The notes under the pieces: model-generated
Told to the model about the DNA's origin: nothing
Databases searched by the model: none
What the model saw: only the letters and a program-made list of their open reading frames with translations
Shown: in pieces, positions 19,611 to 48,000 of the stretch
Layout: each line of letters starts with the position of its first letter
How positions within the stretch are numbered: position 1 is the first letter of the stretch
Assembly: GCA_002269645.1 (NCBI GenBank)
Contig: NIVC01001448.1
Span: 62,001 to 126,000 of the forward strand
Direction of reading: 5' to 3'
DNA length: 64,000 nt
Source: Macrostomum lignano
Taxonomy: Eukaryota
Program-made: the position numbers and the translations under genes

Positions 19611-19670
19611 CAGCCAGCCAGCCCCGCGGCCTCATTGCAGCGCTGAGCCCAGCATCCCAACTGCTTCATC

Positions 19671-22129: not shown

Positions 22130-22390
22130 GCTGAGGCCAATGGGGTCAATGGACTCAAGCTGATGTCAATGGGGGTCAATGGACTCCAGCTGAGGTCAAT
22201 GGGGTCAATGGACTCCAGCTGATGTTAATGGGGTCAATGGACTCCAGCTGATGTCAATGGGGTCAATGGACTCCAGCTGAGGTCAATGGGGTCAATGGAC
22301 TCCAGCTGAGGTCAATGGGGTCAATGGACTCCAGCTGAGGTCAATGGGGTCAATGGACTCCAGCTGAGGTCAATGGGCTCCAGCTGAAGT
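22130..22390. repeat. 29-bp minisatellite
   Basis: Unit gtcaatggggtcaatggactccagctgag. Confidence 0.9.
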
Positions 22391-23214
22391 GGGAGCGGAG
22401 ATGGAAGCGGAGTCAGTGGCGTCTGCCACTTCTGCATGGTGAACTGCGTCAGTCTCTGTTGCTGCACTCTCGGAATGGCAATAAACAGGCGTCTGGTCTC
22501 CTACGCTCCTACGTGTCACTCTTGGCGCCAGTCTGTCTTTTGAAGGATCGTCTTATTGACTAGATTGCCCCATTTTTATGATTTCTGACCCTCTCAGGTC
22601 CCTCGGAGCCAATCAGAGTCGAGCTGGTCATCTCGTCCAATCAAAAAGCCCGTCGCTTGAAATAACAAACTATAGCAGCTGGAAATCCCCAAGACGTCAG
22701 CCGTCACCCCTTTCGACATCGATTTTGTGACTGAGTCTCCCCTGCTCCTCTCGGCTTCACCTGAGCGACATGCGGATGGGTGCAGCGCTTCTCATTCAAT
22801 CAGTGCTTTTGAGCTGTCTGAGTAGCGACTGGATTTGCCAAAACTGCGAGAAAGAGCGCGGGCGAGTGTCCAATTGCTGGTGGGACAAATAGCTAAGAAT
22901 GAACCAGCACGTAAGAAGCTATATTTAGAAACACGCAGTCGGGGTAGAGAGAAAGGGAATCGAAAGTAATAAACGGAGGCGAGAGCCAGGCTGTGCATTT
23001 AAAGTAATAAACTGGACCTCTTCGTGAGCCACGAGCATGGAGAGGCCTAAATATTTATCGATCGTACAATTATTATACACTCTAGATAGATCGTGCACAC
23101 AAGAGGAAAGTAAAACGGCCCAATTAGGGGCAACTAAACGCAAAAATACAAGTAGTATATAGGAATTGATACGATTTTTGTCAGTTTATGTGGATCTGAC
23201 ATCAAGACAGAGCG

Positions 23215-23610
23215 GGGGTGAGACACAGCGAGAGTAAGACACAGCAAAGGCAAAACAGAGCGAGGGTAAGACACTAAGACACAGCGAGGGTAAGACACAG
23301 CAAAGGCAAAACAGAGCGAGGGTAAGACACTAAGATACAGCGAGAGTAAGACACAGCAAAGGCAAAACAGAGCGAGGGTAAGACACAGCAAAGGCAAAAC
23401 AGAGCGAGGGTAAGACACTAAGACACAGCGAGGGTAAGACACAGCAAAGGCAAAACAGAGCGAGGGTAAGACACTAAGACACAGCGAGGGTAAGACACAG
23501 CAAAGGCAAAACAGAGCGAGGGTAAGACACTAAGACACAGCGAGGGTAAGAAACAGCAAAGGCAAAACAGAGCGAGGGTAAGACACAGCAAAGGCAAAAC
23601 AGAGCGAGGG
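23215..23610. repeat. compound purine-rich minisatellite
   Basis: Alternating gcgagggtaagacacagcaaaggcaaaacaga and gcgagggtaagacactaagacaca units. Confidence 0.9.
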
Positions 23611-23864
23611 TGTTATTATAAGTCGTAAGAGCGAGGGTCGATTATAAGTGACAAGAGCAAGAAGTTACAACATTACAATTTTAAGGATTTACAAAAATTA
23701 AATTTATAACAATCGTGAGAGTTTGAAATAGAAATATTCAAACTGCCAAATGTCATTAACCCGCGTGCGGAAACCGGTCAAGTCTCTCAGTCTGAGTCTC
23801 TCGACTCTTAGGTTCAAGGGCAGTCTTCTTGGCTCTGAGACGGGGGCTGCGACCTGCCTGTCCG

Positions 23865-24315
23865 GTCACTGAATGTTCATGAGGGAGCTGTCAGGCTGTC
23901 AGTCACTGAATGTTCATGAGGGAGCTGTCAGGCTGTCAGTCACTGAATGTTCATGAGGGAGCTGTCAGGCTGTCAGTCACTGAATGTTCATGAGGGAGCT
24001 GTCAGGCTGTCAGTCACTGAATGTTCATGAGGGAGCTGTCAGGCTGTCAGTCACTGAATGTTCATGAGGGAGCTGTCAGGCTGTCAGTCACTGAATGTTC
24101 ATGAGGGAGCTGTCAGGCTGTCAGTCACTGAATGTTCATGAGGGAGCTGTCAGGCTTTCAGTCACTGAATGTTCATGAGGGAGCTGTCAGGCTGTCAGTC
24201 ACTGAATGCTCATGAGGGAGCTGTCAGGCTGTCAGTCACTGAATGTTCATGAGGGAGCTGTCAGGCTGTCAGTCACTGAATGTTCATGAGGGAGCTGTCA
24301 GGCTGTCAGTCACTG
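23865..24315. repeat. 37-bp satellite family, array 1
   Basis: Unit gtcactgaatgttcatgagggagctgtcaggctgtca; period checked at 23881/23918, about 12 copies. Confidence 0.95.
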
Positions 24316-25017
24316 CAGGGTACAGGATGAAATCAATTTGCAGACTGGTTGAGTTCACTATGAGCTAGAGCAGGTGCTTAAATAGTGCCCGAGTATGCAA
24401 TATTTTAAATCATAAAAGTACATTTAATACAGTATATTCATTAGGAACATGTACAGTACAGTAAAATTTCTCAAACAGCTCTTATATTTAAAATGTTTCT
24501 ACGAGTATAAATATTAAAATATTTCTCATATTTAAAATGAACATTTTTGCTTTAAAAACAAAATTTCTTAAAAAAGCGGAGAGGCTCACAAATTACGAGT
24601 TCAACTCAAGCTGCTGCATCAAGTCTCTCCAGCTTCTCCCTGACACAGCTGACCTTTGAATTTTCAGGTTCACGCAGACAACTGCTGCCTGTGCATTTGG
24701 CTTGAATATTTCATTAATAGCAGTGGCAATTGGGTATTGAAGTCCGCAGAAAAAAATCGCAGAGAAAAGCCCGCATCAAAGCAGACACGCAGTTTGAAGG
24801 GAAAAAGCAATTCAGCATGCAGTGTGAATTGAATTGCAGCACAAATGTGCGAAACTGCAGTTCACAGCAGGAGGGCTGCTCACACTCGATGGCTCTCGGT
24901 GTGCTTATTTCAGCAACAATGCAAATCATAGTTATCTGGGCAACGAAGTCCGACTACCCAAAGTACAAACCAAAAGTACATGAAAATTGTGTCAGCATTG
25001 AACACCTCACCGGGTAG

Positions 25018-28000
25018 TCAGTCTGACTCAGCCTTCCTTTTCCGGTCTCGACGTTGTGACTCGACTTTGAGGACTCCGGCTGCTGCATCAAGTCTGTCGA
25101 ACTTCATCAGTCTCATTCGACTGAGCTTGGCGTGAGTCCAGCTGTCTCTCTGCTCTGCTGCAGTTTCCATGGAAACCAGGCGACCCAAGTCGGCCCCGTC
25201 TCGCCGCAGCCTCGCCCTCGCCCACAGCCTCCGCTCCTCATCTTCCCTGCTGCGGTGAGCGCCGCTGTCGCTGCCGCTGCGGTACGAAACTCGCCACCGC
25301 TTCTGCCTGACCCAGCCGATCTTCTCCTCGTCCTGCGTCTCCATGGCGACGCGTCTCTTTTTCTCGATCATCTCCATCTGCTGCAGGCTGAGCTCCACGT
25401 GCTCGCGGCAGTCGCTGTAGTGAGCCAGAGTGAGCAGCTCCTCCAAGTCCGGGTCTCCAAGCATATCTTTCGAGTCCGAGTCTCCAAGCAGCTCTTCCGA
25501 GTCCGAGTCTCCAAGCATATCTTTCGAGTCCGAGTCTCCAAGCATCGCTTCCGAGTCCGGGTCTCCAAGCATATCTTTCGAGTCCGAGTCTCCAAGCAGC
25601 TCTTCCGAGTCCGAGTCTCCAAGCATATCTTTCGAGTCCGAGTCTCCAAGCATATCTTTCGAGTCCGAGTCTCCAAGCAGCTCTTCCGAGTCCGAGTCTC
25701 CAAGCATATCTTTCGAGTCCGAGTCTCCAAGCATCGCTTCCGAGTCCGGGTCTCCAAGCATATCTTTCGAGTCCGAGTCTCCAAGCAGCTCTTCCGAGTC
25801 CGAGTCTCCAAGCATATCTTTCGAGTCCGAGTCTCCAAGCATATCTTTCGAGTCCGAGTCTCCAAGCAGCTCTTCCGAGTCCGAGTCTCCAAGCATATCT
25901 TTCGAGTCCGAGTCTCCAAGCATATCTTTCGAGTCCGAGTCTCCAAGCATATCTTTCGAGTCCGAGTCTCCAAGCAGCTCTTCCGAGTCCGAGTCTCCAA
26001 GCATATCTTTCGAGTCCGGGTCTCCAAGCATATCTTTCGAGTCCGGGTCTCCAAGCAGCTCTTCCGAGTCCGAGTCTCCAAGCAGCTGTTCAATCCAATG
26101 ATCAAATGCGATTGCAGGTGCGCGATTGCGGAGCAGCTCAGCTTGGAGACTCCAGCTCAGGCAGCGGAAGTTCACGTACAGGTGGGAGGAGAGAGGCTGC
26201 GACAGTCTGGCTGTGAACAGAGTCTGCGTGAACTCGGGAAGGAATGGGAAGCGAGGCGGAGAGTCGCAGGGGAGGCAGAACCTCCATGCCCAGTCTGAGT
26301 CTTCTGGCAAATTAGTTTGGTCATAGTCTTCATCTCTTTGAATTTCCTGTTGCCTCAACCCTGACTTAACCTGATGTCTCTGCAGCTCCATCGTGAGTCT
26401 CTCAGCCTCCTCAGATTCTCCGAACTTCAAATGCGCCATGGCGGTCATGCACAGGGCGGCGCACTCGCAACGCTGCAGCTCATGCAGAAGACTGAGGTGC
26501 TTCATCAGGGTGTCTCTGTCGCTTGATTCCGACTGCAGCTCGCTCACACAGTGGTGCACCGCAATGTACACGTCTGCGAAAATAGTTTTATAACTTCCTT
26601 CCCTGATCTCCGTGACAGCAGGCGGTGCTGTCAGAGGCAGCAGAGTGAACGGGTGAAAGTAGAACTTCTCTGACTGCAGAGGTCTCACGAGTCCCCTAAG
26701 CTGCTTGGCCACTCCGCTGATGTCGCTTCTCAATTCACAAAGTCGGTCTCGAACCCTTGCCTTCGTGTTGTCGAAGTCGCCGCCGATTCCAGCGTTCTTG
26801 AAGTAGAGCGGAGCGTCGGGCATGAAGAAGTGCGGCATGCACTCATCGGGCGAGCTGCTCGAGTCGATGAAGTTCAGAATCATGTCGAGAGACTCCTTGA
26901 GCAGAGCGATCAGATTATGGGGCTGCCAAGCCTCAGTTTCAGGATCTGTGCCATGCTTCTCCAGCATTGTGAAGAGCAGAGTCTTTGCATGGTAGGTCTT
27001 GAGTCCAGGTGTGTCCAGAGTGAGAGGCAAGTGTCTCTTGAAGATGAACTTGATGAGTGTGAACAGCTGGCCCTGGACTGTGCTCAGCTGTCTCATGATG
27101 CGTTTCTCCTGGAAGCTGAAGCTCACTCTGAGCTCGTTGGTCGAGCTCGGTCTGGTCGCCCGCACGAGATGAACTGCATTGTCATTGTCACTTGTATCAA
27201 GCAGTTCTCTAATTCTGTCCTCACAGAAACTGCTGCAGCACCAGATCGCATGGCACGTGTCCTGTGCAGGCCGCACACCGCACGCCGTGGCTGTCACTGC
27301 AGGTTCGCTGCCTGCAGAGCACAGTGAGCGGAGAGTGGCTTTGTGGTGAGTGAAAAAGATGGCTTGGTTTGAAACTGCTTGCAGGGGCACCGCTATGGAG
27401 TTGATGGTGGGCAGAGAAAGAGGAACTGTGTCGTAACCCGGGTCGGTTTGGGTGCCCAGTCCCGAGTACAATATATATTATACGTGATATAACAGGCGTT
27501 GTGACGCTCTGTCTCTTTTATGAATACGAGCAGGCGTAACGACGCTCTGCGATAATAGTCCGATCGCTCTGGTGTTGTGACACTCAGAGTTCATGCTGCG
27601 GCTCGAGGTGTGGTGACACTCTCGAGTGCTTCTAGTCTCGATACTGTAGGTTGTACACACTATATAGAGTAGACGGTACAGTACTACAAAAGCTATATGA
27701 TCTCCCGGCGTTATGACGCTCTGGCAAGAACTCAGCCTAACAAGCTCCCAGAAAAGAAAGAACTCAAACAGCAGGCGGCTTACCAGCCGCAGCCAACCAG
27801 CCTGAGCAGGGGGCAGGGGCACGGCTGGGGAGGGGCACGCGCAAAGCCCGGCCGGCAGCCAGACCCTGCCACGCCCGCCAACCCCCCAACCAGCCCCAAA
27901 GTGCAACGCGCCCTGCCAACTGACAAGGATGCATGCACTACAAATGAATTTTACTTTCTGTCAGATCAGGTTTTCACGTATTGCGTATTGTAGGCATGCT

Positions 28001-30217
28001 TATAATGTGTGTGCATGGGATTGCATAATAATTGTTTCTATGAGAGAGGTGCGATCGGAGTAATTGGTTGCCACAATTTGTATTTAAAGCGAAATGAGTG
28101 CTGGGTGGTATTTCAGCAAGGTTTTGAACTCAGGTTGAAGTTGTGAACTCAGAAATTCGGCCACTCGGTATCGAATCAAAATGAATGATTATTGGACAAA
28201 TCCAACAAATCCTGCTGCATGCGGGTCTCAGCATTCTGATGATGAACCTGCCTCACTCACCTGCTCCCACTTCCACCTGTGCGTGGCCCTCCTTGACCTG
28301 CAGTCGAGTGGCGTCTCTGCAGAAGTCCCTTATTCCTTCGCAGCCACCTACCAGATGGAACTTTTGATTTTGCCCAGCAACCAGCACCGTCCAGTCAATG
28401 TCCGAGTCTGCAGCTGTCCTGCCGTTCACTTGCACCAGACTGTTGGCCCAGCCCTCTGCGTAGCTGCCCGTCATCTGCCTGTAATCCTGTGTGAGGTCTC
28501 GAGCGACTTCTTCCAGCCAGTCAGCCAGTCTATGCTGACACTTTGCTCTCTGCCAGGTGAATCCCGCCTTGCTGAGCAGTCGATGCAGCTCCTCGCTGAG
28601 GTCTTGCTCGGAGTGGTGTGAGAGTCTGGGTGGAGAGGTGAGAGTGGAGTCAATGGAGGCGGATTTAAAAATTGCAGTGGTTCAACCCAAGGGAGGAAGA
28701 CAGTCAGACTCACGGATGGAGGCGTTGAGCGGCTGGCTGTGGGTGCTGAGGGTTTCTGGAATGTGTGAACGAAAGCGAGGTAAGGTAGCGAAGTGATTGC
28801 AAGTAGAATGGCAAGTAATGGCAACTGACTCGATAGGATTCAGCAGCCACAGCACCTGCCGCTGCTCAAATCGCTGTGCGAGCTCCGCACACGTGAGGCC
28901 CTGACTGTCTCGATGGCTGGCATCGGCTCCATAGTCGATGAGAGTCTTGGCTGCTCGCACGTGACCGGCTTGGCAGGCTCGTGACAGAGCAGTGCGACCG
29001 TGAGTGTCTTGAGCGTGGAGTGAGGCGCCGAAATCGATGAGTTTGTGAATGAGTTCGTGATGACCTGCATCAGCTGCGAGCATGAGAGCGGTGGCTCCGG
29101 TGTTGTCGTCTGGGAGATCGACTTGCTGTGTGCTGAATCGCTCATGATTGAGCAGCGGGGCGGCAAGAGCGACGTGTCTTTGGGAGATGGAGAGACGGAG
29201 CAGGCGTGTGATTTGAGCCGGCTGAATTTGAGAAAGGGTGTCGGTGAGAACGGAGTTCCTGCCTTCGATGGCCATAGCAGCAGTGAAGCTGAGGATGGTG
29301 TTGGATTGAAAGAGCCATTGGGGCTCGAGGCCGAGAAAGGCAACGACATTTTCGTGAAGACGAGAGCAAGACTTGACTGCGCATTGGAAACGGAGCTTCG
29401 CTTTTAGATCGTCACTTGAGAGACGAGAGATGAGAGACTTGACGATTTTAAAGTGACCATTGTCTGCAGCAGATTCGGCAGCTTTGATGCAGCAGGTGTC
29501 CCTGTTTGATTGGCCATTGATTTGTGAGAGGAGAAACTCGACGATTTCAAAGTGACCATTGTCTGCAGCAGATTCGGCAGCTTTGATGCAGCAGGTGTCC
29601 CTGTTTGATTCGTCATTGATTTGTGAGAGGAGAAACTCGACGATTTCAAAGTGACCATAATTTGCAGCATTTTCGGCAGCTTTGATGCAGCAGGTTTCCC
29701 TGTTTGATTGGTCATTGATTTGTGAGAGAAAATGCTTGACGTCTTCAAAGTGACCACAAACTGCAGCAATTTCGGCAGCTTTGATGCAGCAAGTGTCCCT
29801 GTTTGATTCGTCATTGATTTGTGAGAGAAAATGCTTGACGTCTTCAAAGTGACCACAAACTGCAGCAATTTCGGCAGCTTTGATGCAGCAAGTGTCCCTG
29901 TTTGATTTGTCATTGATTTTTGAGAGGAGAAACTCGACGATTTCAAAGTGATCATTTTCTGCCGCTTTTTCGGCAGCTTTGATGCAGCAGGTGTCCCTGT
30001 TTGATTTGTCATTGATTTTTGAGAGGAGAAACTCGACGATTTCAAAGTGATCATTTTCTGCCGCTTTTTCGGCAGCATTGATGCAGCAGGTGTCCCTGTT
30101 TGATTGGTCATTGATTTGTGAGAGGAAAGAGGTGACGTCTTCAAAGCGACCATTGCGTGCAGCATCAATAATGTTTTCGGTGGTCTCTCGCTGATGTCGG
30201 CTTTGATTTTGGTCCAT
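25018..30217 (-). CDS. ankyrin-repeat + Mab-21/cGAS-like nucleotidyltransferase (cGLR), paralog 1; predicted exons 30217-28714, 28602-28261, 27311-25018 (about 1379 aa)
   Basis: About 8 33-aa ANK-like units, canonical ANKs (ALMLAADAGHHELIHKLIDFGA; GRTALSRACQAGH), NTase motif TGSYAEG..DSDIDW, Mab-21 motifs LRVSFSFQEK..VQGQLFTLIKFIFK, LKTYHAKTLLF, CMPHFFMP. GTGAGT donors at 28713 and 28260, ctctgcag acceptor at 27312. The exon-2 acceptor is uncertain (see finding). Confidence 0.85.
25440..26085 (-). repeat. in-frame 27-bp coding minisatellite (23 extra DSDSKDMLG/DSDSEELLG units) inside cGLR paralog 1
   Basis: Counted from the ORF. Paralogs have a single LLGDPDLEELL. Confidence 0.95.
29410..30160 (-). 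repeat. 99-bp coding tandem repeat (about 8 ankyrin-like units)
   Basis: SQINDQSNRDTCCIKAAEKAAxNGHFEIVEFL units. Confidence 0.9.
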
Positions 30218-30239
30218 TGTTCTGGAGAGCGGAATTGGA

Positions 30240-30960
30240 TGAAAAAAATAAAGTGGGAAAGAAACAGAAAGGCACTAAGAAGAAAGTCAGAAAGAGGGGA
30301 GGAAGAGAGAGGAAGGAAGAAAGAGGGGGAGAAAGAGGGGAGGGATAAAGATTGAAGGGAGGGAGAAAGAGAGAGGGAGGGAGAAAGAGGGAAGGGAGGG
30401 AGAGAGAGAGGAGGGAGGGAGGGAGAAAGAGGGGAGGGAGAAAGAGGCGGGAGAAGAGGGGAGGGAGAAAGAGGGAGGGAAGGAGGGAGGGGAAGGAGGC
30501 GGGAGAAAGAGGGAGGGGAAGGAGGAGAGGGAGAAAGAGGCGAGGGAGGGAGGGAGAGAGAGAGAGGAGGGAGGGAGGAGGGAGGGAGGAGGGAGGGAGA
30601 GAGAGGGGAGGGAGGGAGAAAGAGGGGGAGAAAGAGGGAGGGGGAAGGAGGGGAGGGAGAAAGAGGGAGGGAGGAAGAGAGAGGGGAGGGAGGGAGGGAG
30701 AAAGAGGCGGGAGAAGAGGGGAGGGAGAAGGAGGGGAGGGAGAAAGAGGGAGGGGAAGGAGGGGAGGAAGAAAGAGGGAGCCTGAAAGAGGGGGGGGAGA
30801 AGTAGGGGAGGGAGGGAGAAAGAACGGGAGAAAGAGAGAAGGGAGAAAGAAAGAGGAGGGAGAAAGAGAGAAAGGGGAGAAAGAGGGGAGGGAGAAAGAG
30901 AGAAAGGGGAGAAAGAGGGGAGGGAGAAAGAGAGAAAGGGGAGAAAGAGGGGAGGGAGGG
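30240..30960. repeat. about 720-bp near-pure polypurine (GGGA/GAGA) tract directly upstream of the cGLR paralog 1 start
   Basis: Almost exclusively G/A on the + strand. Confidence 0.95.
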
Positions 30961-31145
30961 AGCTGTCAGGCTGTCAGTCACTGAATGTTCATGAGGTAGC
31001 TGTCAGGCTGTCAGTCACTGAATGTTCATGAGGGAGCTGTCAGGCTGTCAGTCACTGAATGTTCATGAGGTAGCTGTCAGGCTGTCAGTCACTGAATGTT
31101 CATGAGGGAGCTGTCAGGCTGTCAGTCACTGAATGTTCATGAGGG
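30960..31145. repeat. 37-bp satellite family, array 2 (beside the block junction)
   Basis: Same unit as 23865-24315. Confidence 0.9.
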
Positions 31146-32351
31146 AGAAGAAAGGGAGGTGGAGAAGAGAGGGAGGGAGGGAGAAGAAAGGGAGGGGGAG
31201 AAGAGAGGGAGGGGGAGAAGAGAGGGAGGGGGAGAAGAAACGGAGGGAGGGATTTTTAATTTGTTTTACTGTGGCTCTCGTGTTTGCCCCACAATGCGTG
31301 CTTGCGTCACCTTGCAGCTGAGCTCTGCAGCCGCTCCATGTAGCTTTTGGTTCCGCAAATATAAGCCCGATATTTACTCAGATCTGACGCGATTTGTCTG
31401 TTGACTGTCTCCGTGTTGGTTTCGCTTTCAATACTGAGGTCTTCAGCTCCATCACCCAGCTGCCCAGATCCTCAGCATCACCCAGCTGCCCAGATCCTCA
31501 GCTGCATCACCCAGCTGCCCAGCTCCTCAGCTGCATCACCCACCTGCCCAGCTCCTCAGCTCCATCACCCAGCTGCCAAGATCCTCAGCTCCATCATCCA
31601 TCTGCCCAGATCCTCTATGGTTGCTATATCTAATCCACAAAAAATTAATCTACGAAGTTACAAAATTCCTTACTATCTACTTCCTATTTAATCAGTAGTG
31701 TACCTGAACTATGAGCAGAGAAATGTGCTGCAATTGGCGCGATTCTCGTAAAAAAGCAGAGTTCCCCATGGCTATTATGATGTTAAATCTTTGAGCATAC
31801 GCTCGTACATACTACTAACTGATCTATACTTAGTAGTACGAGTATAAGGCGTTTTGATAGGATGCCTAAGGCTGCTTGTTAGTAGTTTCAGAGGTCAGTT
31901 ATAGTGTCAGGGTGCCTGAGCTGGATCAGGATGTCAGAAGCTGGGTCAGGATGTCAGAAGCTGGGTCAGGATTTCAGAAGCTGGGTCAGAATGTCAGAAG
32001 CTGGGTCAGGATTTCAGAAGCTGGGTCAGGATGTCAGAAGCTGGGTCAGGATGTCAGAAGCTGTGTCAGGATTTCAGAAGCTGGGTCAGGATGTCAGAAG
32101 CTGGGTCAGGATGTCAGAAGCTGTGTCAGGATTTCAGAAGCTGGATCAGGATGTCAGAAGCTGGGTCAGGATGTCAGAAGCTGTGTCAGGATGCCAGAAG
32201 CTATGTCAGGATTTCAGAAGCTGGGTCAGGATGTCAGAAGCTGGGCGTCAGGCTGTCAGCTGTTCAGCTCGCCCCAAACCGCACTGTCGCGGCCACTCAC
32301 TACTTGCAGTAGCGGGTGTCAGCCGGCAGGAAGCGGCACAGAAAGTACACA

Positions 32352-35300
32352 ATGTACGACAGCGGCAACCACAAAGAATCGCACAGCAGGGAGGACATCT
32401 GCTGCCGGCTGTTCATCGGAGGCCTGTCCCCGTCAGTGACCTCTGACAGCCTGCACAAGTACTTCAGCCAGTACGGCACTGTGCAGCACTGCAATGTGCC
32501 CAAGGACCCCAAGACTCAGAGATCCAAGGGCTACGGCTTTCTGACGTACAAGGACCGGGAGAGTGTGGACTCCGCCCAGCTGCACCGGCCTCACGTGCTG
32601 GATGGTCGCCAGGTGCGAGGCTGAGTTGTGTGGGCGGCTTTTGAGTAGCCTTGAAGTTGAACTGGCTCAGAATCTGCTGCTCAACTGCCTGCTGAGCAGA
32701 GCTGGTTAACTGGCTCAGAATCTGCTGCTCAACTGCCTGCTGAGCAGAGCTGGTTAACTGGCTCAGAATCAGCTGCTCAACTGCCTGCTGAGCAGAGCTG
32801 GTTAACTGAGTCGCCTGAACTGGCACTGAAAATCGCTCACCAAAAATCGCCCTAAGTCGCCCCAAAATCGCCCCAAATCGCCCCAAAATCGCCCCAGGTC
32901 GAGACGAAGCGCGCGATGCCCCGCGAAGAAGCCAACAACCCGGAGGCGCACATCACCACCAAGAAGCTGTTTGTCGGCGCCCTTCGCAATGTTCATGAGG
33001 GAGCTGTCAGGCTGTCAGTCATTGCCGGAGTATGCAATATTTTAAATCATCAAAGTACATTTAATACAGTATATTCATTAGGAACATGTACAGTACAGTA
33101 AAATTTCTCAAACAGCTCGCGCAAAAGCCAGTTAAGTTTAAAAAGTTAAACATGTAAATATTTAAAATGAACATTTTTGATTTAAAAACAAAATTTATTA
33201 AAAAGGCGGAGAGGCTTACAAAATTCCGAGTTCAACTCAAGCTGCTGCATCAAGTCTCTCCAGCTGGCTGCTGGCTGAGGAGGTGCCGGCTGACCTTTGA
33301 TGCTATTGTGACCTTGCAGCCTTTTATGTACTTTTATTCTTGTCTTCAGGGATTTTGCAGGTGATTCACTGTAGGATTCTCATTTTGTATTTAGGAATTT
33401 ACTTTTGTTAACTCAAAATCATGAAAGCTCTTAGCACGCGGCAGTTTGAAGGCAGCATTGAGGGGCAGAAAGCACAGAGGGTAAGATCGAGAACTGAGGC
33501 ACGAACTCTTCCATTATTTTCAAATTTGTGTGTTAACTGAAAAAAGCAAGCAAACAGACTACAAATGTATTTTAGCAAAGTAACAAAATGATGAATTGCA
33601 AATTGGGGAATTTTATCATTTCGTCGATATCTGACGAGCTGAGGGTGGGATTTCATGAGGGAGCTGTCAGGCTGTCAGTCACTGAGTGTTCATGAGGGAG
33701 CTGTCAGGCTGTCAGTCACTGAATGTTTATGAGGGAGCTGTCAGGCTGTCAGTCAGTGAATGTTCATGAGGGGGCTGTCAGGCTGTCAGTCACTGAATGT
33801 TCATTAGGGAGCTGTCAGGCTGTCAGTCACTGAATGTTCATGAGAAGCTGTCAGGGGGACGCTTTCATAAAACATAAATTTCACAACGCCTAAATTTAAT
33901 AACGCCTAAACCCAAAAATGCAGCGTCCTTCACATCGCCTAAATCTCAAAACGCCTAAAATTTTTGCTAATTAAAAATTTTAATGTTTTGAAATTTAGGC
34001 GATATGAAATTTAGGCGTTGTGAAGTCATGTGCTTTAGGCATTGTGAAATTTAAGCCTTAGAAAGCGCCCCCCTGTCAGGCTGTCAGTCACTGAAGGGTA
34101 CATGAGTACCTGATGAAAGTACATAAAATTAATTTGCAGACTGATTGAGCTGAATTTATGAGCAGGTACTTAAATAATCAGGGAGCATGTACACACAGCA
34201 TTTTAAGCTATCAAAGAACATCTAAAATATTTATCAGTAACATATGCAGTAAAAGTTTCTCGAAAAGCCCCCCAAATCCAGAAAACCTTTAAAAATTACG
34301 AGTTCAACTCAAGCTGCTGCATCAAGTCTCTCCAGCTTCTCCCTGACCCAACAGACCTTTGAATTTTCCAGGTTCATGCAGATAACTGCTACCTGTGCAT
34401 TTGGCTTGAATATTTCATTAAACAGCAGTGGCAATTGGGTATTGAAGTCCGCAAAACAAAATCGCAGAGAAAAGCCCGCATCAAAGCAGACACGCAGTTT
34501 GAAGGGAAAAAGCTATTCAGCATGCAGTGTGAATTGAATCGCAGCAAAAATGTACAAAACTGCAGTTCATAGCATGAGGGCTGCTCGCACTCCATTCCAT
34601 TTCCAGAGTAAATTGTATTCGCAACGAAAATAGCACCAGGCAGTCAGTCTGACTCGGCCTTCCTTTTACGACCTCGACTTTGCGACTCGACTTTGAGGAC
34701 TCCGGATGCTGCATCAAGTCCCTCCAGCTTCTGCCTGACCCAGCCGATCTTCTCCTCGTCCTGCGTCTCCATGGCGACGCGTCTCTCTTTCTCGATCATC
34801 TCCATCTGCTGCAGGCTGAGCTCCACGTGCTCGCGGCAGTCGCTGTAGTGAGCCAGAGTGAGCAGCTCCTCCAAGTCCGGGTCTCCAAGCAGCTGTTCAA
34901 TCCAATGATCGAATGCGATTGCAGGTGCGCGATTGCGGAGCAGCTCAGCTTGGAGACTCCAGCTCAGGCAGCGGAAGTTCACGTACAGGTGGGAGGAGAG
35001 AGGCTGCGACAGTCTGGCTGTGAACAGAGTCTGCGTGAACTCGGGAAGGAATGGGAAGCGAGGTGGACAGTCGCAGGGGAGGCAGAACCTCCATGCCCAG
35101 TCTAAAACTTTTGGCAGTCTTATACTTTTTAGCAAAATACCCTCTTCATAAATATCCTGTGGCTCCAACCCTGACTCAACCTGATGTCTCTGAAGCTCCA
35201 TCGCGAGTCTCTTAGCCTCCTCAGATTCTCCGAACTTCAAATGCGCCATGGCGGTCATGCACAGGGCGGCGCACTTGCACCACTGCAGATGATTCAGGAG

Positions 35301-36640
35301 ACTGAGCTGCCTCATCAGGGTGTCTCTGTCACTCGATTCTGACTGCAGCTCGCTCACACACTGGTGCACCACACTGTACACGTCTGCGAACTTGTAGTAA
35401 AACTCATAGTGACCACTTCCATAGTGACGCTGAGCAGAGCTGGTTAACTGGCTCAGAATCAGCTGCTCAACTGCCTGCTGAGCAGAGCTGGTTAACTGGC
35501 TCAGAATCAGCTGCTCAACTGCCTGCTGAGCAGAGCTGGTTAACTGGCTCAGAATTAGCTGCTCAACAGCCTGCTGAGCACAGCTGGTTAACTGGCTCAG
35601 AATCAGCTGCTCAACTGCCTGCTGACCAGAGCTGGTCAACTGAGTCGCCTGAACTGGCACTGAAAATCGCTCACCAAAATCGCCCTAAGTCGCCCCCAAA
35701 ATCGCCCCAGGTCGAGACTAAGCGCGCGATGCCCCGCGAAGAAGCCAACAACCCGGAGGCGCACATCACCACCAAGAAGCTGTTTGTCGGCGCCCTTCGC
35801 AAGGACGTCACCGACCAGCTGCTGCGGGACTATTTCTCAGCCTACGGCACCATTGTCGACGCGTACATCGTCAGGGACAACGCCACGGGAGACAGTCGCG
35901 GCTTCGGCTTCGTCGTGTTCGATGACTATGACCCCGTGGACAAAGTGATGCTGTACAAGCCTCACCTGCTGCGCGCTGGAGGCTCAGTCAGCATCACGGA
36001 CGTGAAGAAAGGCCTCACCAAGGAGGAGCTGGCCAGCGCGCACCTTCGCGAGCAGCAGCAGTCTCGCGGCGGCGGCAGCAGCGGGGGCGGCAGCGGCAGC
36101 GGCATGCAGGCCAACATGGGCGGCCCTCCCGGCGCTATGATGATGTCAGGCGGTGCCATGGGGCCCTGGGGTCCCATGATGGGACCCATGATGGGCGGCG
36201 GCAGCGGACCGAAGCCGCAGCAGCAGCAGCACGGAAAGCAGCCGCAGGCCGCGTCTTCAAAGCCCTCCAAGAGTCCCGCTGGGGTTGGCGGCGGCGGCGG
36301 CCCAGGACCCAACGGCATGGGCGGCCCTGGCGGCTCGATGGGACCCTACGGACCCATGGGCATGATGGGCATGATGGGACCCGGTCCCATGGGTCCTATG
36401 GGCATGATGGGACCAGGTCCAATGGGCCCAATGGGCATGATGGGACCAGGTCCTATGGGTCCAATGGGCATGATGGGACCAGGTCCCATGGGCCCGATGG
36501 GCATGATGGGACCTGGCTTCGGGTTCTATCCGAATCAGTGCGGTGGCTACGGACCGATGGGGCGCGGAGGCTGGGGCGGATTCCGCAGCTCGCCCTATTC
36601 AATGATGCCGCCGCACAGAACCCGCAGCAACTCCACCTGA
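32352..36640 (+). CDS. hnRNP A/B gene 1 copy 2; exon 1 32352-32612, complete exon 2 35711-36640 (about 396 aa); intron holds a truncated exon-2 copy and an antisense cGLR fragment
   Basis: Exon 1 near-identical to 14698-14958 with donor gtgcga at 32613; intact acceptor cccag|GTC at 35711; ORF 35729-36640 near-identical to 15575-16522. Confidence 0.85.
32898..32989 (+). pseudogene. truncated duplicate of hnRNP gene 1 exon 2 (92 nt) with intact splice acceptor
   Basis: cccag|GTCGAGACGAAGCGC..GCCCTTCGCAA then an abrupt switch to the 37-bp satellite (tgttcatgagg). Confidence 0.9.
32990..35100. repeat. near-identical direct duplicate of 43430-45540 (cGLR 3' end and downstream region)
   Basis: Offset 10440-10441 throughout; the same MITE and satellites; only isolated differences seen. 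Confidence 0.95.
33854..34073. mobile_element. 220-bp MITE inserted in the 37-bp satellite
   Basis: TIR GGGGGACGCTTTC / GAAAGCGCCCCCC (12/13), apparent 5-bp TSD tgtca (33849-33853; 34074-34078), internal subterminal repeats cgcctaaa (left) and tttaggc (right). Confidence 0.85.
34644..35428 (-). pseudogene. 5'-truncated C-terminal fragment of a third cGLR paralog
   Basis: KFADVYSVVHQCVSELQSE..WAWRFCLP..RKRKAESD*. The 5' end is fused to the 48-bp hnRNP intron satellite; the ORF start at 35660 is a GTG in intron sequence. Confidence 0.85.
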
Positions 36641-39273: not shown

Positions 39274-40894
39274 ATGGTATTCGGCGGAGCTTCCGGTGGC
39301 AGCAGGCAGTCGGCGCTGGCGCCGCGCGATCCGAGCGACGAGGCGTTCCGCAAAATCTTCGTCGGCGGCCTCAGTCCCGACGTGAGCACCGACGGCCTGC
39401 GCGAGTACTTTGCCAAGTTCGGCGAAGTCACCGACTGCGTGGCGGTCAGGAACCCGGCCACTCAGCGGTCCAAGGGCTTCGGCTTCGTCACCTTCAAAGA
39501 CGCCGAGACCGTGAATGCGGTGCAGGCCAAGCGGCCCCACACCATTCAGGATAAGGAGGTGAGCGGAGCTCTGAGTAGCCCAGAAATGCCTCAGCTGCTC
39601 CCAGCCTCCCAGATGAAGCCTCAAATGCCTCACTCACGGCTGCTCCCAGCCTCCCAGATGAAGCCTCAAATGCCTCACTCACAGCTGCTCCCAGCCTCCC
39701 AGATGAAGCCTCAAATGCCTCACTCACGGCTGCTCCCAGCCTCCCAGATGAAGCCTCAAATGCCTCACTCACAGCTGCTCCTAGCCTCCCAGATGAAGCC
39801 TCGAATGCCTCACTCACGGCTGCACCCAGCCTCCCAGATGAAGCCTCCCAGATGAAGCCTCAAATGCCTCACTCACAGCTGCTCCTAGCCTCCCAGATGA
39901 AGCCTCGAATGCCTCACTCACGGCTGCACCCAGCCTCCCAGATGAAGCCTCAAATGCCTCACTCACGGCTGCTTCCAGCCTCCCAGATGAAGCGCCAAAT
40001 GCCTCACTTACGGCTGCTCCCAGCCTCCCAGATGAAGCCTCAAATGCCTCACTCACAGCTGCTCCCTGCCTCCCAGATGAAGCCTCAAATGCCTCACAGC
40101 TGCTCCCAGCCTCCCAGATGAAGCCTCAAATGCCTCACTCACAGCTGCTCCCAGCCTCCCAGATGAAGCCTCAAATGCCTCACTCACAGCTGCTCCCAGC
40201 CTCCCAGATGAAGCCTCAAATGCCTCACTCACGGCTGCTCCCAGCTTCCCAGATGAAGCCTCAAATGCCTCACTCACGGCTGCTCTCAGCCTCCCAGATG
40301 AAGCCTCAAATGCCTCACTCACGGCTGCTCCCCGCCCTCTCCCAGGTGGAGGTGAAGCGCGCGATGCCCCGTGACGAGGGCGACCGCCCGGAGTTCCGCG
40401 TCACCACCCCGAAGCTGTTCGTTGGCTCGCTGCCGAAGGACGCCACCGAGGACGAGATCCGCGAGCAGTTCGGCCAGTTCGGTGACATCGAGTCCGTTGA
40501 AATCGCCCGCGTCAAGGAGACGGGCGACAGTCGCGGCTTCGGCTTCGTGACCTTCTCCGACTACGACTCCGTTGACAAGGCGGTGCTGCACCGGCCGCAC
40601 CGAGTGAAGAACTGCGGTGTGGATGTGCGCAAGGGTCTCAGCCGCGAGGAGATGCAGCGGGTCCGCATGCGCCAGCAGCAGCAGCAGCAGCAGTTCCAGC
40701 AGCCCTACGGCTACCCGTACCAGCAGCAGGAAGCTGGAGGCTACGGCGGCTTCGCTGGAGGCTACGGCGGCGGCTACGGCGGCGGCTACGGGCCGCAAAT
40801 CGGGCGCGGCGGCTGGCGGGGGGTGCCGTACGCAGGCGGCTGGCAGCGAGGCGGCGGCGGCGGCTACCGAGGAGGTCGCGGCCGCGGCATTTGA
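39274..40894 (+). CDS. hnRNP A/B-like gene 2 copy 2; exons 39274-39558 and 40346-40894 (about 277 aa), intact RGG/YGG tail
   Basis: Same motifs as copy 1; ends GVPYAGGWQRGGGGGYRGGRGRGI*. Confidence 0.93.
39575..40340. repeat. 45-bp minisatellite filling the intron (787-nt intron versus 353 nt in copy 1)
   Basis: 15-aa MKPQMPHSRLLPASQ periodicity in spurious ORFs. Confidence 0.95.
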
Positions 40895-43259: not shown

Positions 43260-43460
43260 AGTCACTGAGTGTTCATGAGGGAGCTGTCAGTCACTGAATG
43301 TTCATGAGGGAGCTGTCAGGCTGTCAGTCACTGAATGTTCATGAGGGAGCTGTCAGTCACTGAATGTTCATGAGGGAGCTGTCAGGCTGTCAGTCACTGA
43401 ATGTTCATGAGGGAGCTGTCAGTCACTGAATGTTCATGAGGGAGCTGTCAGGCTGTCAGT
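43260..43460. repeat. 37-bp satellite family array (further arrays at 33650-33850 and 44095-44290)
   Basis: Same unit as 23865-24315, some 29-bp shortened units. Confidence 0.9.
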
Positions 43461-44293
43461 CATTGCCGGAGTATGCAATATTTTAAATCATCAAAGTACA
43501 TTTAATACAGTATATTCATTAGGAACATGTACAGTACAGTAAAATTTCTCAAACAGCTCGCGCAAAAGCCAGTTAAGTTTAAAAAGTTAAACATGTAAAT
43601 ATTTAAAATGAACATTTTTGATTTAAAAACAAAATTTATTAAAAAGGCGGAGAGGCTTACAAAATTCCGAGTTCAACTCAAGCTGCTGCATCAAGTCTCT
43701 CCAGCTGGCTGCTGGCTGAGGAGGTGCCGGCTGACCTTTGATGCTATTGTGACCTTGCAGCCTTTTATGTACTTTTATTCTTGTCTTCAGGGATTTTGCA
43801 GGTGATTCACTGTAGGATTCTCATTTTGTATTTAGGAATTTACTTTTGTTAACTCAAAATCATGAAAGCTCTTAGCACGCGGCAGTTTGAAGGCAGCATT
43901 GAGGGGCAGAAAGCACAGAGGGTAAGATCGAGAACTGAGGCACGAACTCTTCCATTATTTTCAAATTTGTGTGTTAACTGAAAAAAGCAAGCAAACAGAC
44001 TACAAATGTATTTTAGCAAAGTAACAAAATGATGAATTGCAAATTGGGGAATTTTATCATTTCGTCGATATCTGACGAGCTGAGGGTGGGATTTCATGAG
44101 GGAGCTGTCAGGCTGTCAGTCACTGAGTGTTCATGAGGGAGCTGTCAGGCTGTCAGTCACTGAATGTTTATGAGGGAGCTGTCAGGCTGTCAGTCAGTGA
44201 ATGTTCATGAGGGGCTGTCAGGCTGTCAGTCACTGAATGTTCATTAGGGAGCTGTCAGGCTGTCAGTCACTGAATGTTCATGAGAAGCTGTCA

Positions 44294-44513
44294 GGGGGAC
44301 GCTTTCATAAAACATAAATTTCACAACGCCTAAATTTAATAACGCCTAAACCCAAAAATGCAGCGTCCTTCACATCGCCTAAATCTCAAAACGCCTAAAA
44401 TTTTTGCTAATTAAAAATTTTAATGTTTTGAAATTTAGGCGATATGAAATTTAGGCGTTGTGAAGTCATGTGCTTTAGGCATTGTGAAATTTAAGCCTTA
44501 GAAAGCGCCCCCC
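44294..44513. mobile_element. 220-bp MITE, duplicate of 33854-34073
   Basis: Identical TIRs and TSD at offset 10440. Confidence 0.85.
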
Positions 44514-45083
44514 TGTCAGGCTGTCAGTCACTGAAGGGTACATGAGTACCTGATGAAAGTACATAAAATTAATTTGCAGACTGATTGAGCTGAATTTATG
44601 AGCAGGTACTTAAATAATCAGGGAGCATGTACACACAGCATTTTAAGCTATCAAAGAACATCTAAAATATTTATCAGTAACATATGCAGTAAAAGTTTCT
44701 CGAAAAGCCCCCCAAATCCAGAAAACCTTTAAAAATTACGAGTTCAACTCAAGCTGCTGCATCAAGTCTCTCCAGCTTCTCCCTGACCCAACAGACCTTT
44801 GAATTTTCCAGGTTCATGCAGATAACTGCTACCTGTGCATTTGGCTTGAATATTTCATTAAACAGCAGTGGCAATTGGGTATTGAAGTCCGCAAAACAAA
44901 ATCGCAGAGAAAAGCCCGCATCAAAGCAGACACGCAGTTTGAAGGGAAAAAGCTATTCAGCATGCAGTGTGAATTGAATCGCAGCAAAAATGTACAAAAC
45001 TGCAGTTCATAGCATGAGGGCTGCTCGCACTCCATTCCATTTCCAGAGTAAATTGTATTCGCAACGAAAATAGCACCAGGCAG

Positions 45084-48000
45084 TCAGTCTGACTCGGCCT
45101 TCCTTTTACGACCTCGACTTTGCGACTCGACTTTGAGGACTCCGGATGCTGCATCAAGTCCCTCCAGCTTCTGCCTGACCCAGCCGATCTTCTCCTCGTC
45201 CTGCGTCTCCATGGCGACGCGTCTCTCTTTCTCGATCATCTCCATCTGCTGCAGGCTGAGCTCCACGTGCTCGCGGCAGTCGCTGTAGTGAGCCAGAGTG
45301 AGCAGCTCCTCCAAGTCCGGGTCTCCAAGCAGCTGTTCAATCCAATGATCGAATGCAATTGCAGGTGCGCGATTGCGGAGCAGCTCAGCTTGGAGACTCC
45401 AGCTCAGGCAGCGGAAGTTCACGTACAGGTGGGAGGAGAGAGGCTGCGACAGTCTGGCTGTGAACAGAGTCTGCGTGAACTCGGGAAGGAATGGGAAGCG
45501 AGGCGGAGAGTCGCAGGGGAGGCAGAACCTCCACGCCCAGTCTGAGTCTTCTGGCAATTCAGTTTCGCTTAAGGCTGTCACTTGAATATCCTGTGGCTTC
45601 AACCCTGACTTAACCTGATGTCTCTGCAGCTCCATCGCGAGTCTCTCAGCCTCCTCAGATTCTCCGAACTTCAAATGCGCCATGGCGGTCATGCACAGGG
45701 CGGCGCACTTGCACCACTGCAGCTCATGCAGAAGACTGAGCTGCCTCATCAGGGTGTCTCTGTCGCTCGATTCCGACTGCAGCTCGCTCACACACTGGTG
45801 CATCACACTGTACACGTCTGCAAACTTGAAGTAATAAAACTCTGACCAATAAGTTCCTTTCCTGATCTCCATGTCAGCAGGCGGCGCTGTCAGAGGCAGC
45901 AGAGTGAACGGGTGAAAGTAGAACTTCTCTGACTGCAGAGGTCTCACGAGTCTCCTCAGCTGCTCGACCACTCCGCCGATGTCGCTTCTCAGCTCACAAA
46001 GTCGGTCTCGAACCCTCGCCTTCGTGTTGTCGAAGTCGCCGCCGATTCCAGCGTTCTTGAAGTAGAGCGGAGCGTCGGGCATGAAGAAGTGCGGCATGCA
46101 CTCATCGGGCGAGCTGCTCGAGTCGATAAAGCTCAGCATCATGTCGAGAGACTCTTTGAGTAGAGTGATCAGATTGTGGGGCTGCCAAGCTTCAGCTTTA
46201 GTAGCGCCATGAATTCCAAGCGGGATCCACCATGCTTCAGCTTTCGGATCTGTGCCATGCTTCTCCAGCATGAAGAATAGCAGAGTCTTTGCATGGTAGG
46301 TCTTGAGTCCAGGTGTGTCCAGAGTGAGCGGCAAGTGTCTCTTGAAGATGAACTTGGTGAGTGTGAACAGCTGGCCCTGGACTGTGCTCAGGTCTCTCAT
46401 GATGTGTTTCTCTTGGAAGCTGAAGCTCACTCTGAGCTCGTTGGTCTTACTCGGTCTGGTCGCTCGCACGAGGTGAACAAGATCGCTGTATCCAAGCAGT
46501 TGTTTCACTCTGTTTTTACAGAAACTGCTGCAGCACTCGATCGCATGGCACGTGTCTTGTGCAGGCCGCACACCGCACGCCGTGGCTGTCACTGCAGGTT
46601 GGCTGCCTGCAGAGCGCAGTGAGAGGAGAGTCGCTTTGTTAAATTCGTTAAAATGCTTGTAGAGAGTTATTAGACCATACCGTAATGCTCTACTTAAAGT
46701 AATATTCTAAGGAAGTCAATTTCTTTCAATATGAGTCATATCTATTTTAGGAATCACGCGCAAACAGAATGATTTAGAACCCTACATTGTTTGATCAAGG
46801 AACCGGATTTCAACAGCTGTATTTGTTTTTCTATGGTAATGCTCAAACATGCATGACCGCTTAATCAAACATTTTTGACCTAAGTAAATACCCAATCCCA
46901 AACCGGTTTTTCTCCAAAATTTTGCTATAAATATAAGTCAACATTCGAGTCAAAAATTCAGACTCAGGGCGGTCTCTAAGAAGACTCCGAAGAAATAAGA
47001 AGACCAATCACAGAGGGACCACACCTGTCCAATTGGTAAGCGTTTACCCGATTTAGTTAATTGTTAATAGCGCTAATAAGTTGATTAATTGAGTATACGA
47101 GAGCCACTTATCGCTCGACACATTTGAGAAAGGCCTCCTTGTTTCCTAGGATACATTCGTAGAGGATTTATTGAATTGAATTGAGTTATCCGTTACGTTT
47201 CGGACGTAACGAAGAAGACGCCCTTCAGGAGGACCTATCACAGAAAGTTAGAGGATTCAATTGTTCATAAGGGCGCACGTTCTACTGTTAATTCCGAGCT
47301 CGAGGACCGTCAAGAAATTCTGATTCGCTCTCGTTTTTGGTCGACCCACAGATAAAAGTCAAGGACTCAAGAAGACTACTCCAAATCGGCCGCTACTACC
47401 GTTCAACCAAGTCAGGCAGAGTCACACACCCACCGCAAGAACCAGAAGCCTACCAACCACAAGAGGATCCGCTGCAGTAAGTTATTTGAACTGGTAAATA
47501 CCTAGGCACTTGTTCCCCAGTGTCTAGAAGTGGGAGTTTTTGAGTGACTGATCACCACTCTTAAACTCTTCATGCTTGCAGGGGCACCGCTATGGAGCTG
47601 ATGATGGGCCGAGAAAGAGAAAAATTATTTTACGCTTCTACTTTCTCTCAGCTCAGGTTTTAACGTATCGCGTTTTGTAGACATGAGTATAATATAACGC
47701 GCCCTCACAAAATTCTACATTGATGCCCCGCAAAAAGTAATGTTTATATTATTGTCATTAATGCAAGAGATTTCCGGGCATCAATGTCGAAAATTCCGGG
47801 CTCTGTGTTATTACACAGAATGCAGTTGAAATGTCTATGGCCATTCTTTCTTTTGATTTGCGAGCTCTGGGCCATAGACGAAGTTTTGATGGTCCAGGTC
47901 TAGAGATGGACAGTAAAACTGAAGGAGCTAGAAAAATGCTAAATGTATATTTTTTCAAATCTATTTGATATTTTTCAAATCTGTCAGGACTAAGCTGTGC

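Follow-up and report, generated by a model that had tools for sequence, protein, structure and literature searches.

In Macrostomum lignano, one of four near-identical copies of an hnRNP A-type gene, here called copy B, carries in its only intron a fragment of the neighbouring ankyrin-containing, Mab21/cGAS-like (Ank-Mab21) gene, lying in antisense between two copies of the splice acceptor and the start of exon 2. This arrangement probably arose by a recent microhomology-mediated rearrangement, probably a single one, and the features of its junctions favour either template switching during replication (FoSTeS/MMBIR type) or end joining of the polymerase-theta type as the likely mechanism. The window, that is the whole stretch of 64,000 nt that was analysed, corresponds with 100% identity to contig NIVC01001448.1 of the M. 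lignano assembly Mlig_3_7 (record position = window position + 62000), and all positions given below are those of the window.

The host gene encodes an hnRNP A/B-type protein: RRM_1 is matched twice (E 2.6e-34), a Gly/Met-rich low-complexity tail is visible in the ORF at 35729-36640, and its closest named relatives are flatworm hnRNP A2/A2B1 proteins (50-54% identity). Exon 1 ends in the splice donor CAG/GTGCGA, which is non-consensus at +4. The insertion site is empty in copy A, which lies in the same window (14698-16522), and likewise in the copies on NIVC01002738.1 (L001) and NIVC01001464.1 (L003). On a larger scale, the whole unit is itself tandemly duplicated within the window (13958-31450 versus 31450-55800), and the assembly as a whole is reported to hold three paralogous subgenome copies with 2.2% SNPs between them (PMC10733133). 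A scan of the entire window against Rfam recovered no RNA family above threshold.

Table 1. Features of hnRNP-A copy B, its insert and the donor region (window coordinates)
Feature	Position	Strand	Remarks
Exon 1, hnRNP-A copy B	32352..32612	+	ATG at 32352; 87 codons, phase 0, RRM1
Intron piece 1	32613..32897	+	48-nt satellite, 11-nt AAAATCGCCCC microsatellite, proximal acceptor ...cgccccag
Duplicated start of exon 2, 92 nt ('decoy exon' of the sequence-only reading)	32898..32989	+	Frame continues into insert
Copy of Mab21/cGAS-like 3' flank	32990..34643	-	Donor 43430-45083; 1,654 nt noncoding
Copy of Mab21/cGAS-like last 258 codons and stop	34644..35420	-	777 nt, frame still open
Filler ATAGTGAC	35421..35428	.	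Direct copy of 35406-35413, templated insertion at right junction
Intron piece 2	35429..35710	+	48-nt satellite, unique 3' part of intron, distal authentic acceptor
Complete exon 2	35711..36640	+	RRM2 and Gly/Met-rich tail; stop at 36638-36640
Donor region, 3' flank and 3' end of unit-2 Ank-Mab21-like gene	43430..45860	-	Differs from the insert at about 50 sites from about 45340 upward

The succession of exon 1, satellite intron, 92 nt of exon 2, insert, satellite intron and complete exon 2 (Table 1) had been proposed by the sequence-only reading, and each element was recovered where that reading had placed it, with small corrections. It had described the insert as 2.44 kb of a cGLR 3' region, about 780 nt of it antisense to cGLR mRNAs; the antisense 3' region and its coding stretch stand, and their sizes become 2,431 nt of donor-derived sequence (32990-35420) followed by 8 nt of filler (35421-35428), with a coding stretch of 777 nt. 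Its further claims that both acceptors are intact, and that splicing to the distal one gives the full protein and to the proximal one an RRM1-only protein, agree with the sequence and its predicted reading frames. The duplicated acceptor and exon-2 start (32881-32989 and 35694-35802) correspond over 109 nt with a single mismatch, G at 32906 against T at 35719, apart from which the two acceptors are identical from -17 to +92. The mismatch falls on nucleotide 9 of exon 2, where the NIVC01001464.1 copy likewise has G. Exon 1 spliced to 35711 is predicted to yield 396 aa, 99% identical to PAA55544.1, and spliced to 32898 is predicted to yield 154 aa, the frame of the duplicated exon start running to a stop at 33099-33101 inside the insert.

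Altogether the target duplication measures about 370 nt and includes part of the 48-nt-period satellite, which spans 32660-32808 (3.1 copies) in the first intron piece and 35429-35642 (4.5 copies) in the second. Its left and right copies are set apart by one substitution in the exon and two in the final unit of the satellite, and by an indel amounting to two 11-nt units; they differ from each other more than the insert differs from its donor, which weighs against the proposed origin. Within the insert, a 1-nt indel in a G-run is all that separates the flank-derived part from the donor on this contig. Located in this part are a 37-nt satellite (33652-33855) and a MITE-like palindrome (33848-34079), together with two older remnants of the C-terminal end of the gene (33202-33287 and 34274-34359). 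The coding part, which is antisense to the hnRNP pre-mRNA, represents a C-terminal extension beyond the Mab21 core. At the left junction the two sequences share an AA microhomology at 32988-32989 (cgcAA / ctgAAtgttc), as the sequence-only reading had noted, and the source of the right-junction filler lies 15 nt upstream of it. Exact look-ups of the ORFs spanning the left (61 aa) and right (338 aa) junctions in public assemblies gave no match.

The resemblances at this locus are not due to chance. Insert positions 32988-35400 match window positions 43429-45834 in the same orientation with 98.3% identity, and relative to the paralogue on NIVC01001464.1 the homology extends to 35420 (99.4%). The donor lies 10.4 kb downstream of the insert, on the same contig and the same strand. 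Over 1.93 kb the two are identical (32990-34916 versus 43430-45340), and they have in common the variants specific to this contig, namely an extra 37-nt unit and the sites 34157, 34268 and 34631. From about 45340 upward the donor differs from the insert at about 50 sites, and over its last 500 nt the insert agrees with the gene copies of the other two contigs rather than with today's neighbouring gene, which would require either a later gene conversion of the neighbouring gene or a further template switch to a second template. A site-by-site comparison with the gene copies revealed no substitution private to the insert. L001 and L002 were considered as donors on account of their higher overall identity (99.7-99.9% versus 97.9%) and were dropped, as the first 1.93 kb bears this contig's variants and the differences are confined to the block changed in the neighbouring gene; for the same reasons we regard the neighbouring gene as the donor.

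Members of the donor family combine N-terminal ankyrin repeats with a G-S...D-x-D nucleotidyltransferase motif, the catalytic motifs reading GSYAEGW and DSDIDW; the strand expected by pattern to carry the third catalytic acid reads VHLVRA, an assignment made by eye and not by residue-level structural alignment. An AF2 model of one member, P0124 (pLDDT 72.5), has MAB21L1 (5eom) and cGAS (4k9b/7uyz) as its top PDB matches, with an E-value of 5e-5, a probability of 1.0 and TM scores of up to 0.50 when normalised to the target, and the donor gene is accordingly predicted to adopt a cGAS/MAB21L1-type fold. Pfam Mab-21_C scores around threshold in the family, and a PDB sequence search with the Mab21-like region returned only a spurious match to alanine dehydrogenase. 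The Mab-21_C match covers residues 92-176 of a 502-aa ORF. The inserted fragment (the last 258 residues) begins downstream of it, matches no Pfam family at E<1, and includes neither the nucleotidyltransferase core nor Mab-21_C. The earlier label 'cGLR' is acceptable at the level of the family and does not extend to the inserted piece, which carries no Pfam domain and lies beyond the Mab21 core. The family was found only in M. lignano and in one environmental sequence, and our literature search retrieved nothing on M. lignano together with cGLR, or on Mlig023819, Mlig031693 or Mlig009614. C-terminal pieces of the family also occur in unrelated ML2 gene models (P0137 and P0139), and relic partial copies of the 3' end of the Mab21-like gene are present in its own flank. 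Elsewhere in the window there is a local precedent: at 30960-31147, a block of the 37-nt satellite that also occurs in the insert lies within a GA-rich one and is bordered on either side by GAGGGAG.

The AA microhomology, the 8-nt templated filler, the lack of long homology at the junctions and the nearby matching template on the same strand, 10.4 kb away, are features expected of template switching or alternative end joining, and they support the duplication-with-insertion by template switch that had been suggested from the left junction. In such an event, synthesis would have proceeded across the intron and 92 nt into exon 2 before switching, on the same strand, to a template 10.4 kb further downstream, namely the last 37-nt satellite unit behind the Ank-Mab21 gene. 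From there, 2.43 kb would have been copied, ending inside the last coding exon of that gene, and after an 8-nt stutter synthesis would have resumed in the 48-nt satellite of the hnRNP intron, at a point about 370 nt upstream of where it had left. The outcome would be a duplicated acceptor and exon-2 start with the antisense gene fragment in between.

The arrangement of copy B is read from one Canu/PacBio consensus of a repeat-rich polyploid genome, and it is conceivable, though in our estimate unlikely, that the insert and the duplicated acceptor stem from chimeric reads or a wrong consensus and exist on no chromosome. Mlig_3_7 was assembled with Canu from PacBio reads of pooled worms and then polished with Pilon, and the locus is satellite-rich and present in three or four copies; as regards copy number, the assembly is judged error-prone by the authors of PMC10733133. 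The GenBank protein set lacks copy B as well as both Ank-Mab21 genes of NIVC01001448.1, and in a homologue search with the full-length protein the product of copy B was absent from the annotated proteins. Zero divergence from the donor over 1.93 kb would be expected of an assembly chimera too. However, two independent non-homologous junctions that return to within about 370 nt of each other make up a coherent duplication-plus-insertion, and microhomology and templated filler are signatures of repair, whereas assembly joins fall in long shared repeats. Moreover, chimeras from missed PacBio adapters are inverted, whereas the insert is in direct orientation, and the two target copies differ from each other, which argues that the same reads were not used twice.

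A distinctly unlikely alternative is an origin in two steps. A stretch of about 12.9 kb, reaching from the satellite in the hnRNP intron into the Mab21-like gene, would first have been duplicated in tandem, creating the right junction, and a deletion of about 10.4 kb, from nucleotide 93 of exon 2 to the 37-nt satellite, would then have created the left one. This would yield exactly the observed order of segments and would suit junctions that are unlike each other in type, and the larger tandem duplication in the window indicates that unequal events do happen here. Yet it needs two events without a substitution between them, and no intermediate was seen among the other contigs. Capture of the gene fragment by a transposon or retroelement, which the scattered C-terminal pieces in ML2 models and the MITE-like palindrome in the insert might suggest, is scarcely credible and was rejected: the insert ends have no terminal inverted or direct repeats and no A/T run, there is no poly(A)/poly(T) at 32990 and no short fixed target duplication around the insert, the MITE-like element is in the donor too, and the donor is the adjacent gene including its noncoding flank.

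As to the consequences for copy B, the proximal acceptor should capture much of the cis-splicing because its sequence equals that of the authentic acceptor and the donor site is only 285 nt away. Such capture would give the 154-aa ORF, which covers RRM1, the linker and RRM2's first strand and is followed, about 100 nt past the stop, by an ATTAAA at 33197; should the GT at 33361 or 33481 serve as donor, the result would instead be a nonsense-containing exon. Given this likely capture, copy B is most likely a damaged, redundant duplicate, and the antisense overlap is most likely a by-product of the rearrangement.

There is a slight chance that the duplicated acceptor has instead turned copy B into a pair of cistrons. 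About 30-39% of M. lignano genes undergo trans-splicing, and an acceptor without a cis donor suffices for addition of the spliced leader (PMC8629364), so that an orphaned acceptor could support such a split. Exon 1 would then be cis-spliced to the proximal acceptor to give the 154-aa RRM1-only protein, the distal acceptor at 35711 would take a spliced leader to give a 303-aa protein of RRM2 plus tail from Met 35729, and the read-through RNA in between would be antisense to the Mab21/cGAS-like family. A hint in favour of this comes from the counterpart copy on NIVC01001464.1, which has the same unusual GTGCGA donor as copy B; in the annotated transcript of that counterpart, the coding sequence begins exactly at the first base of exon 2.

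It is very improbable that the insertion is an evolved regulatory module, in which the decoy or poison exon would titrate the full-length hnRNP and the antisense fragment would give dsRNA or small RNAs against the Mab21/cGAS-like family. Genes for RNA-binding proteins often autoregulate through unproductive splicing, and the geometry permits it here: the acceptors are identical, and the GT sites at 33361 and 33481 are consensus-flanked and lie downstream of the stop. Likewise, the antisense coding part comprises 757 21-mers, all of which occur in the P0121 gene, 459 in the unit-2 gene of the window and 326 in the unit-1 gene. However, the module is missing from the three other gene copies (copy A, L001 and L003) and so is not conserved, and the insert shows no divergence, which leaves no time for selection to have acted. 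Among the matches to the full-length protein there was no protein of exon 1 plus decoy read-through; a homologue search with the 67-aa read-through of the decoy exon returned no candidates, but it missed the known hnRNP proteins too and so says nothing either way. Indels between subgenome copies cover 36% of the aligned length of this assembly, large ones being the norm (PMC10733133), and the insertion looks like ordinary structural variation of a freshly polyploid genome rather than an evolved regulatory device. Copy B is thus not likely to be a regulated device.

If real, the locus is a clean, datable example, from the genome of a neopolyploid animal, of how template switching at satellite arrays produces partial exon duplications and antisense gene fragments as raw material for new isoforms, gene fission or pseudogenes. 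It is also a warning for annotators, given the genes missing from the protein set. What is known of hnRNP regulation and cGAS-like signalling is unchanged unless RNA data show the new acceptor or the antisense stretch to be used.

Several known systems invite comparison. As with the poison and decoy exons by which genes for RNA-binding proteins autoregulate, through unproductive splicing coupled to nonsense-mediated decay, a nonproductive acceptor precedes the productive one in copy B, an hnRNP gene, and its use would end the frame early. The known cases are conserved, have splice sites defined on both sides and come with RNA evidence, whereas the exon of copy B is confined to one of the four copies, has not diverged and lacks a defined downstream donor. 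With pseudogene- or antisense-derived endogenous siRNA loci copy B has in common a 777-nt antisense coding copy that is 100% identical to one family member; it differs in that the fragment is intronic. The donor family resembles the ankyrin-containing cGAS-like/Mab21 receptors (Li et al. 2023, PMC9980059) in its ankyrins, nucleotidyltransferase motif and predicted MAB21L1/cGAS fold, whereas the inserted fragment is without any catalytic core. As regards FoSTeS/MMBIR and polymerase-theta joining, the mechanism here is deduced from one assembled sequence, and the last 0.5 kb of the insert may come from a second template; the likeness lies in the 2-nt microhomology, the filler copied from a few nucleotides away, the nearby template on the same strand, the gain of target sequence, and breakpoints in or next to tandem repeats.

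The window holds a tandem segmental duplication, delimited by self-comparison, whose unit 1 (~13958-31450) and unit 2 (~31450-55800) are 87-97% identical and each contain an hnRNP A-type gene, a second two-RRM gene and a minus-strand ankyrin/Mab21-like gene. In unit 2, the intron of the hnRNP A-type gene (copy B), whose spliced product is 99% identical to M. lignano PAA55544.1, carries a partial duplicate of exon 2 and a copy of the 3' end of the neighbouring Mab21-like gene. An earlier sequence-only reading had proposed this order of elements, and sequence comparison bears it out. The stretch 32881-32989 repeats 35694-35802 with one mismatch. The region matched by the insert, 43429-45834, covers the 3' flank of the unit-2 Mab21-like gene together with its last coding exon; because that gene lies on the minus strand and was copied in the same orientation, the insert is antisense to the hnRNP gene. 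Its homology to P0121, a paralogous Mab21-like gene on NIVC01001464.1, extends to 35420 (99.4%). At the left junction exon 2 (cgcAAggac) and donor (ctgAAtgttc) have only AA in common, as that reading had noted.

Features of the duplicated units and of the hnRNP A-type gene copies (window positions unless a contig or locus is named)
Feature	Position	Remarks
hnRNP A-type gene, copy A	14698-16522	unit 1; empty site; annotated PAA67854.1
hnRNP A-type gene, copy B	32352-36640	unit 2
hnRNP A-type copy, NIVC01002738.1		empty site; gene span 1,921 nt
hnRNP A-type copy, NIVC01001464.1		empty site; intron sequence read directly
Intron donors, hnRNP A-type	32613 (copy B); 14959 (copy A); locus L001 (from NIVC01002738.1) 10262; locus L003 (from NIVC01001464.1) 9490
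Second two-RRM gene	19-21 kb (unit 1); 39.2-40.9 kb (unit 2)
Ankyrin-repeat and Mab21-like gene	25018-31000 (unit 1, 25.0-31 kb); 45084-54337 (unit 2, 45.08-54.3 kb)	minus strand
Copy B exon 1	32352-32612	87 codons; donor CAG/GTGCGA
Copy B intron start	to acceptor cgccccag at 32897/32898	48-nt satellite (3.1 copies) and 11-nt microsatellite
Duplicate exon-2 start	32898-32989	92 nt
Insert	from 32990	same-orientation match to 43429-45834, 98.3%
Filler ATAGTGAC	35421-35428	eight bases, repeat of 35406-35413
Right intron piece and exon 2	beyond filler; exon 2 from 35711	4.5 copies of 48-nt satellite, unique intron end, complete exon 2

Elsewhere in the window, the intron of the second RRM gene (39855-40340; 20171-20300) is full of a 45-nt satellite that is open in the coding frame (ASQMKPQMPHSRLLP repeats), so that mechanical ORFs cross the boundary between intron and exon 2. 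At 8230-12618 (plus strand) one unbroken 1,462-aa ORF encodes an EGFR-type receptor tyrosine kinase with Recep_L, Furin-like, GF_recep_IV and PK_Tyr domains; the genes called there in the GenBank record do not include it.

The three other hnRNP A-type gene copies have an empty site, namely an uninterrupted satellite intron of 0.5-0.7 kb. Both the left and right intron pieces of copy B align to these introns and have in common an extra A (ACTGAAAATC), missing in the aligned copy A and NIVC01001464.1 sequences, as expected for sister duplicates. In a four-way alignment of the insert, the neighbouring window gene and two other contigs, no substitution was private to the insert. According to the site table, 32990-34916 is identical to the neighbouring gene save one base in a G run, and these two sequences have in common three point variants and one additional 37-nt satellite unit, all four of them absent from the other contigs. 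The remainder (34917-35420) is identical to the other contigs; there the neighbouring gene differs at ~50 clustered sites within 0.5 kb (45340-45860), with the insert and both other contigs agreeing against it. This block is probably a gene-conversion tract, and on the simplest reading the neighbouring gene would be the donor, overwritten there later by another family member; alternatively, the differing block could stem from a further template switch during the event. Whichever origin holds, both the duplication giving units 1 and 2 and the divergence of the subgenome copies are much older than the insertion.

The structure of copy B fits replicative template switching (FoSTeS/MMBIR) or theta-type end joining. 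Five features agree with these pathways: two non-homologous junctions, 2-nt microhomology at one and, at the other, an 8-nt filler whose template lies 15 nt upstream, a template close by on the same strand, gain of target sequence and breakpoints within satellites. The microhomology, templated filler and nearby same-strand template thus support, as a structural reading, the duplication-with-insertion by template switch suggested earlier. A two-step origin, with tandem duplication followed by deletion, would give the same end product. Misassembly is an unlikely explanation. The window corresponds to record positions 62001-126000 of contig NIVC01001448.1 in assembly Mlig_3_7 (GCA_002269645.1), to which 4698-26522 is 100% identical over 21,825 bases. 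This assembly was built with Canu from PacBio reads of pooled worms of the inbred DV1 line and polished with Pilon (PMC5730564); three paralogous subgenome copies exist for ~70-85% of it, with SNP differences of ~2.2% and indels over 36% of the aligned length (PMC10733133). The known difficulty of this assembly and the zero divergence of the insert would suit an artefact, but the two junctions are coherent with each other, the filler is of the repair type, the insert is in direct orientation and the duplicated target copies differ from one another. Transposition does not suit the structure, there being neither terminal repeats nor poly(A).

At 30960-31147 a GA-rich satellite is interrupted by five units belonging to the 37-nt satellite family that lies behind the Mab21-like genes, and each edge of this block carries GAGGGAG microhomology. 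The stretch of the counterpart array on NIVC01001464.1 that was read (locus L003, 5600-6470) contains no such block. The block resembles a second templated insertion of the same origin. The final coding bases of the Mab21-like gene recur as relics in the gene's 3' flank (33202-33287 and 34274-34359, and at 43.6-44.8 kb in the donor flank), with spacings of 1072 and 392 nt, which suggests that the gene end underwent earlier partial tandem duplications. Given this block and these relics, the neighbourhood seems prone to such events. A palindromic MITE-like element of ~230 nt, with termini CTGTCAGGGGGACGCTTTC...GAAAGCGCCCCCCTGTCAG, is present within the 37-nt satellite in both insert (33848-34079) and donor (44288-44519).

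The donor family has ankyrin repeats, carries the motif GSYAEGW...DSDIDW and matches Mab-21_C weakly, and the predicted structure of one member, P0124, matches MAB21L1 and cGAS. The label of cGAS-like receptor (cGLR) is therefore acceptable for the family, but not for the inserted piece, a C-terminal extension without any of its defining domains. Li et al. reported only Mab21-like proteins in most flatworms, and ankyrin repeats on a minority of cGLRs (PMC9980059). Of 23 sequence relatives, 22 come from M. lignano. The family appears to be a Macrostomum-specific expansion; its third catalytic acid may be replaced (VHLVRA). Both members in the window are absent from the GenBank protein set. One contains a 27-nt coding minisatellite (LGDSDSKDM, 25430-26100) and in the other, ankyrin units of 99 nt form a long array (50036-54212). 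In UniProt, the ML2 models P0137 and P0139 show C-terminal pieces of the family fused with a kinase domain and with an Ig-domain protein; these represent either chimeras of gene prediction or additional fragments of this region that have dispersed.

The two copy B acceptors, previously described as intact, share every base from -17 to +92 and almost every base over 100 nt upstream, and lie 285 nt (proximal) and 3,098 nt (distal) from the donor. By general splicing logic, much of the cis-splicing of copy B should go to the proximal site. Its use would yield an RRM1-only reading frame, with ATTAAA downstream at 33197, or, if GT at 33361 or 33481 served as a donor, an internal exon carrying a nonsense codon. 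The predicted products, 396 aa via 35711 and 154 aa via 32898 (stop 33099-33101), agree with the full and RRM1-only proteins first envisaged. No protein reading through from exon 1 into the decoy was found among the hits to the full-length protein, and the GenBank protein set lacks the copy B product, though that set had been filtered against repeats (PMC5730564).

Consensus donors are present in copy A (GTGAGA) and in the NIVC01002738.1 copy (GTAAGA), both annotated as two-exon genes. The GTGCGA donor is common to copy B and the NIVC01001464.1 copy, whose annotation (PAA67648.1, partial) does not begin until the first base of exon 2. As an acceptor without a cis donor is enough for spliced-leader trans-splicing (PMC8629364), the exon-2 acceptor may sometimes receive the leader. 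Were this so in copy B, we speculate that the duplication could become a gene fission.

Among 21-mers of the antisense part, 757 of 757 match the P0121 gene, 459 the unit-2 gene and 326 the unit-1 gene, and there is therefore sequence potential for cross-family pairing. The proposed role as decoy exon and antisense regulator is nevertheless unsupported and highly improbable, since the module is found in one of four gene copies and is so young that selection cannot have shaped it. Copy B is probably an impaired, redundant duplicate. The arrangement adds one more example to an already known type of rearrangement.
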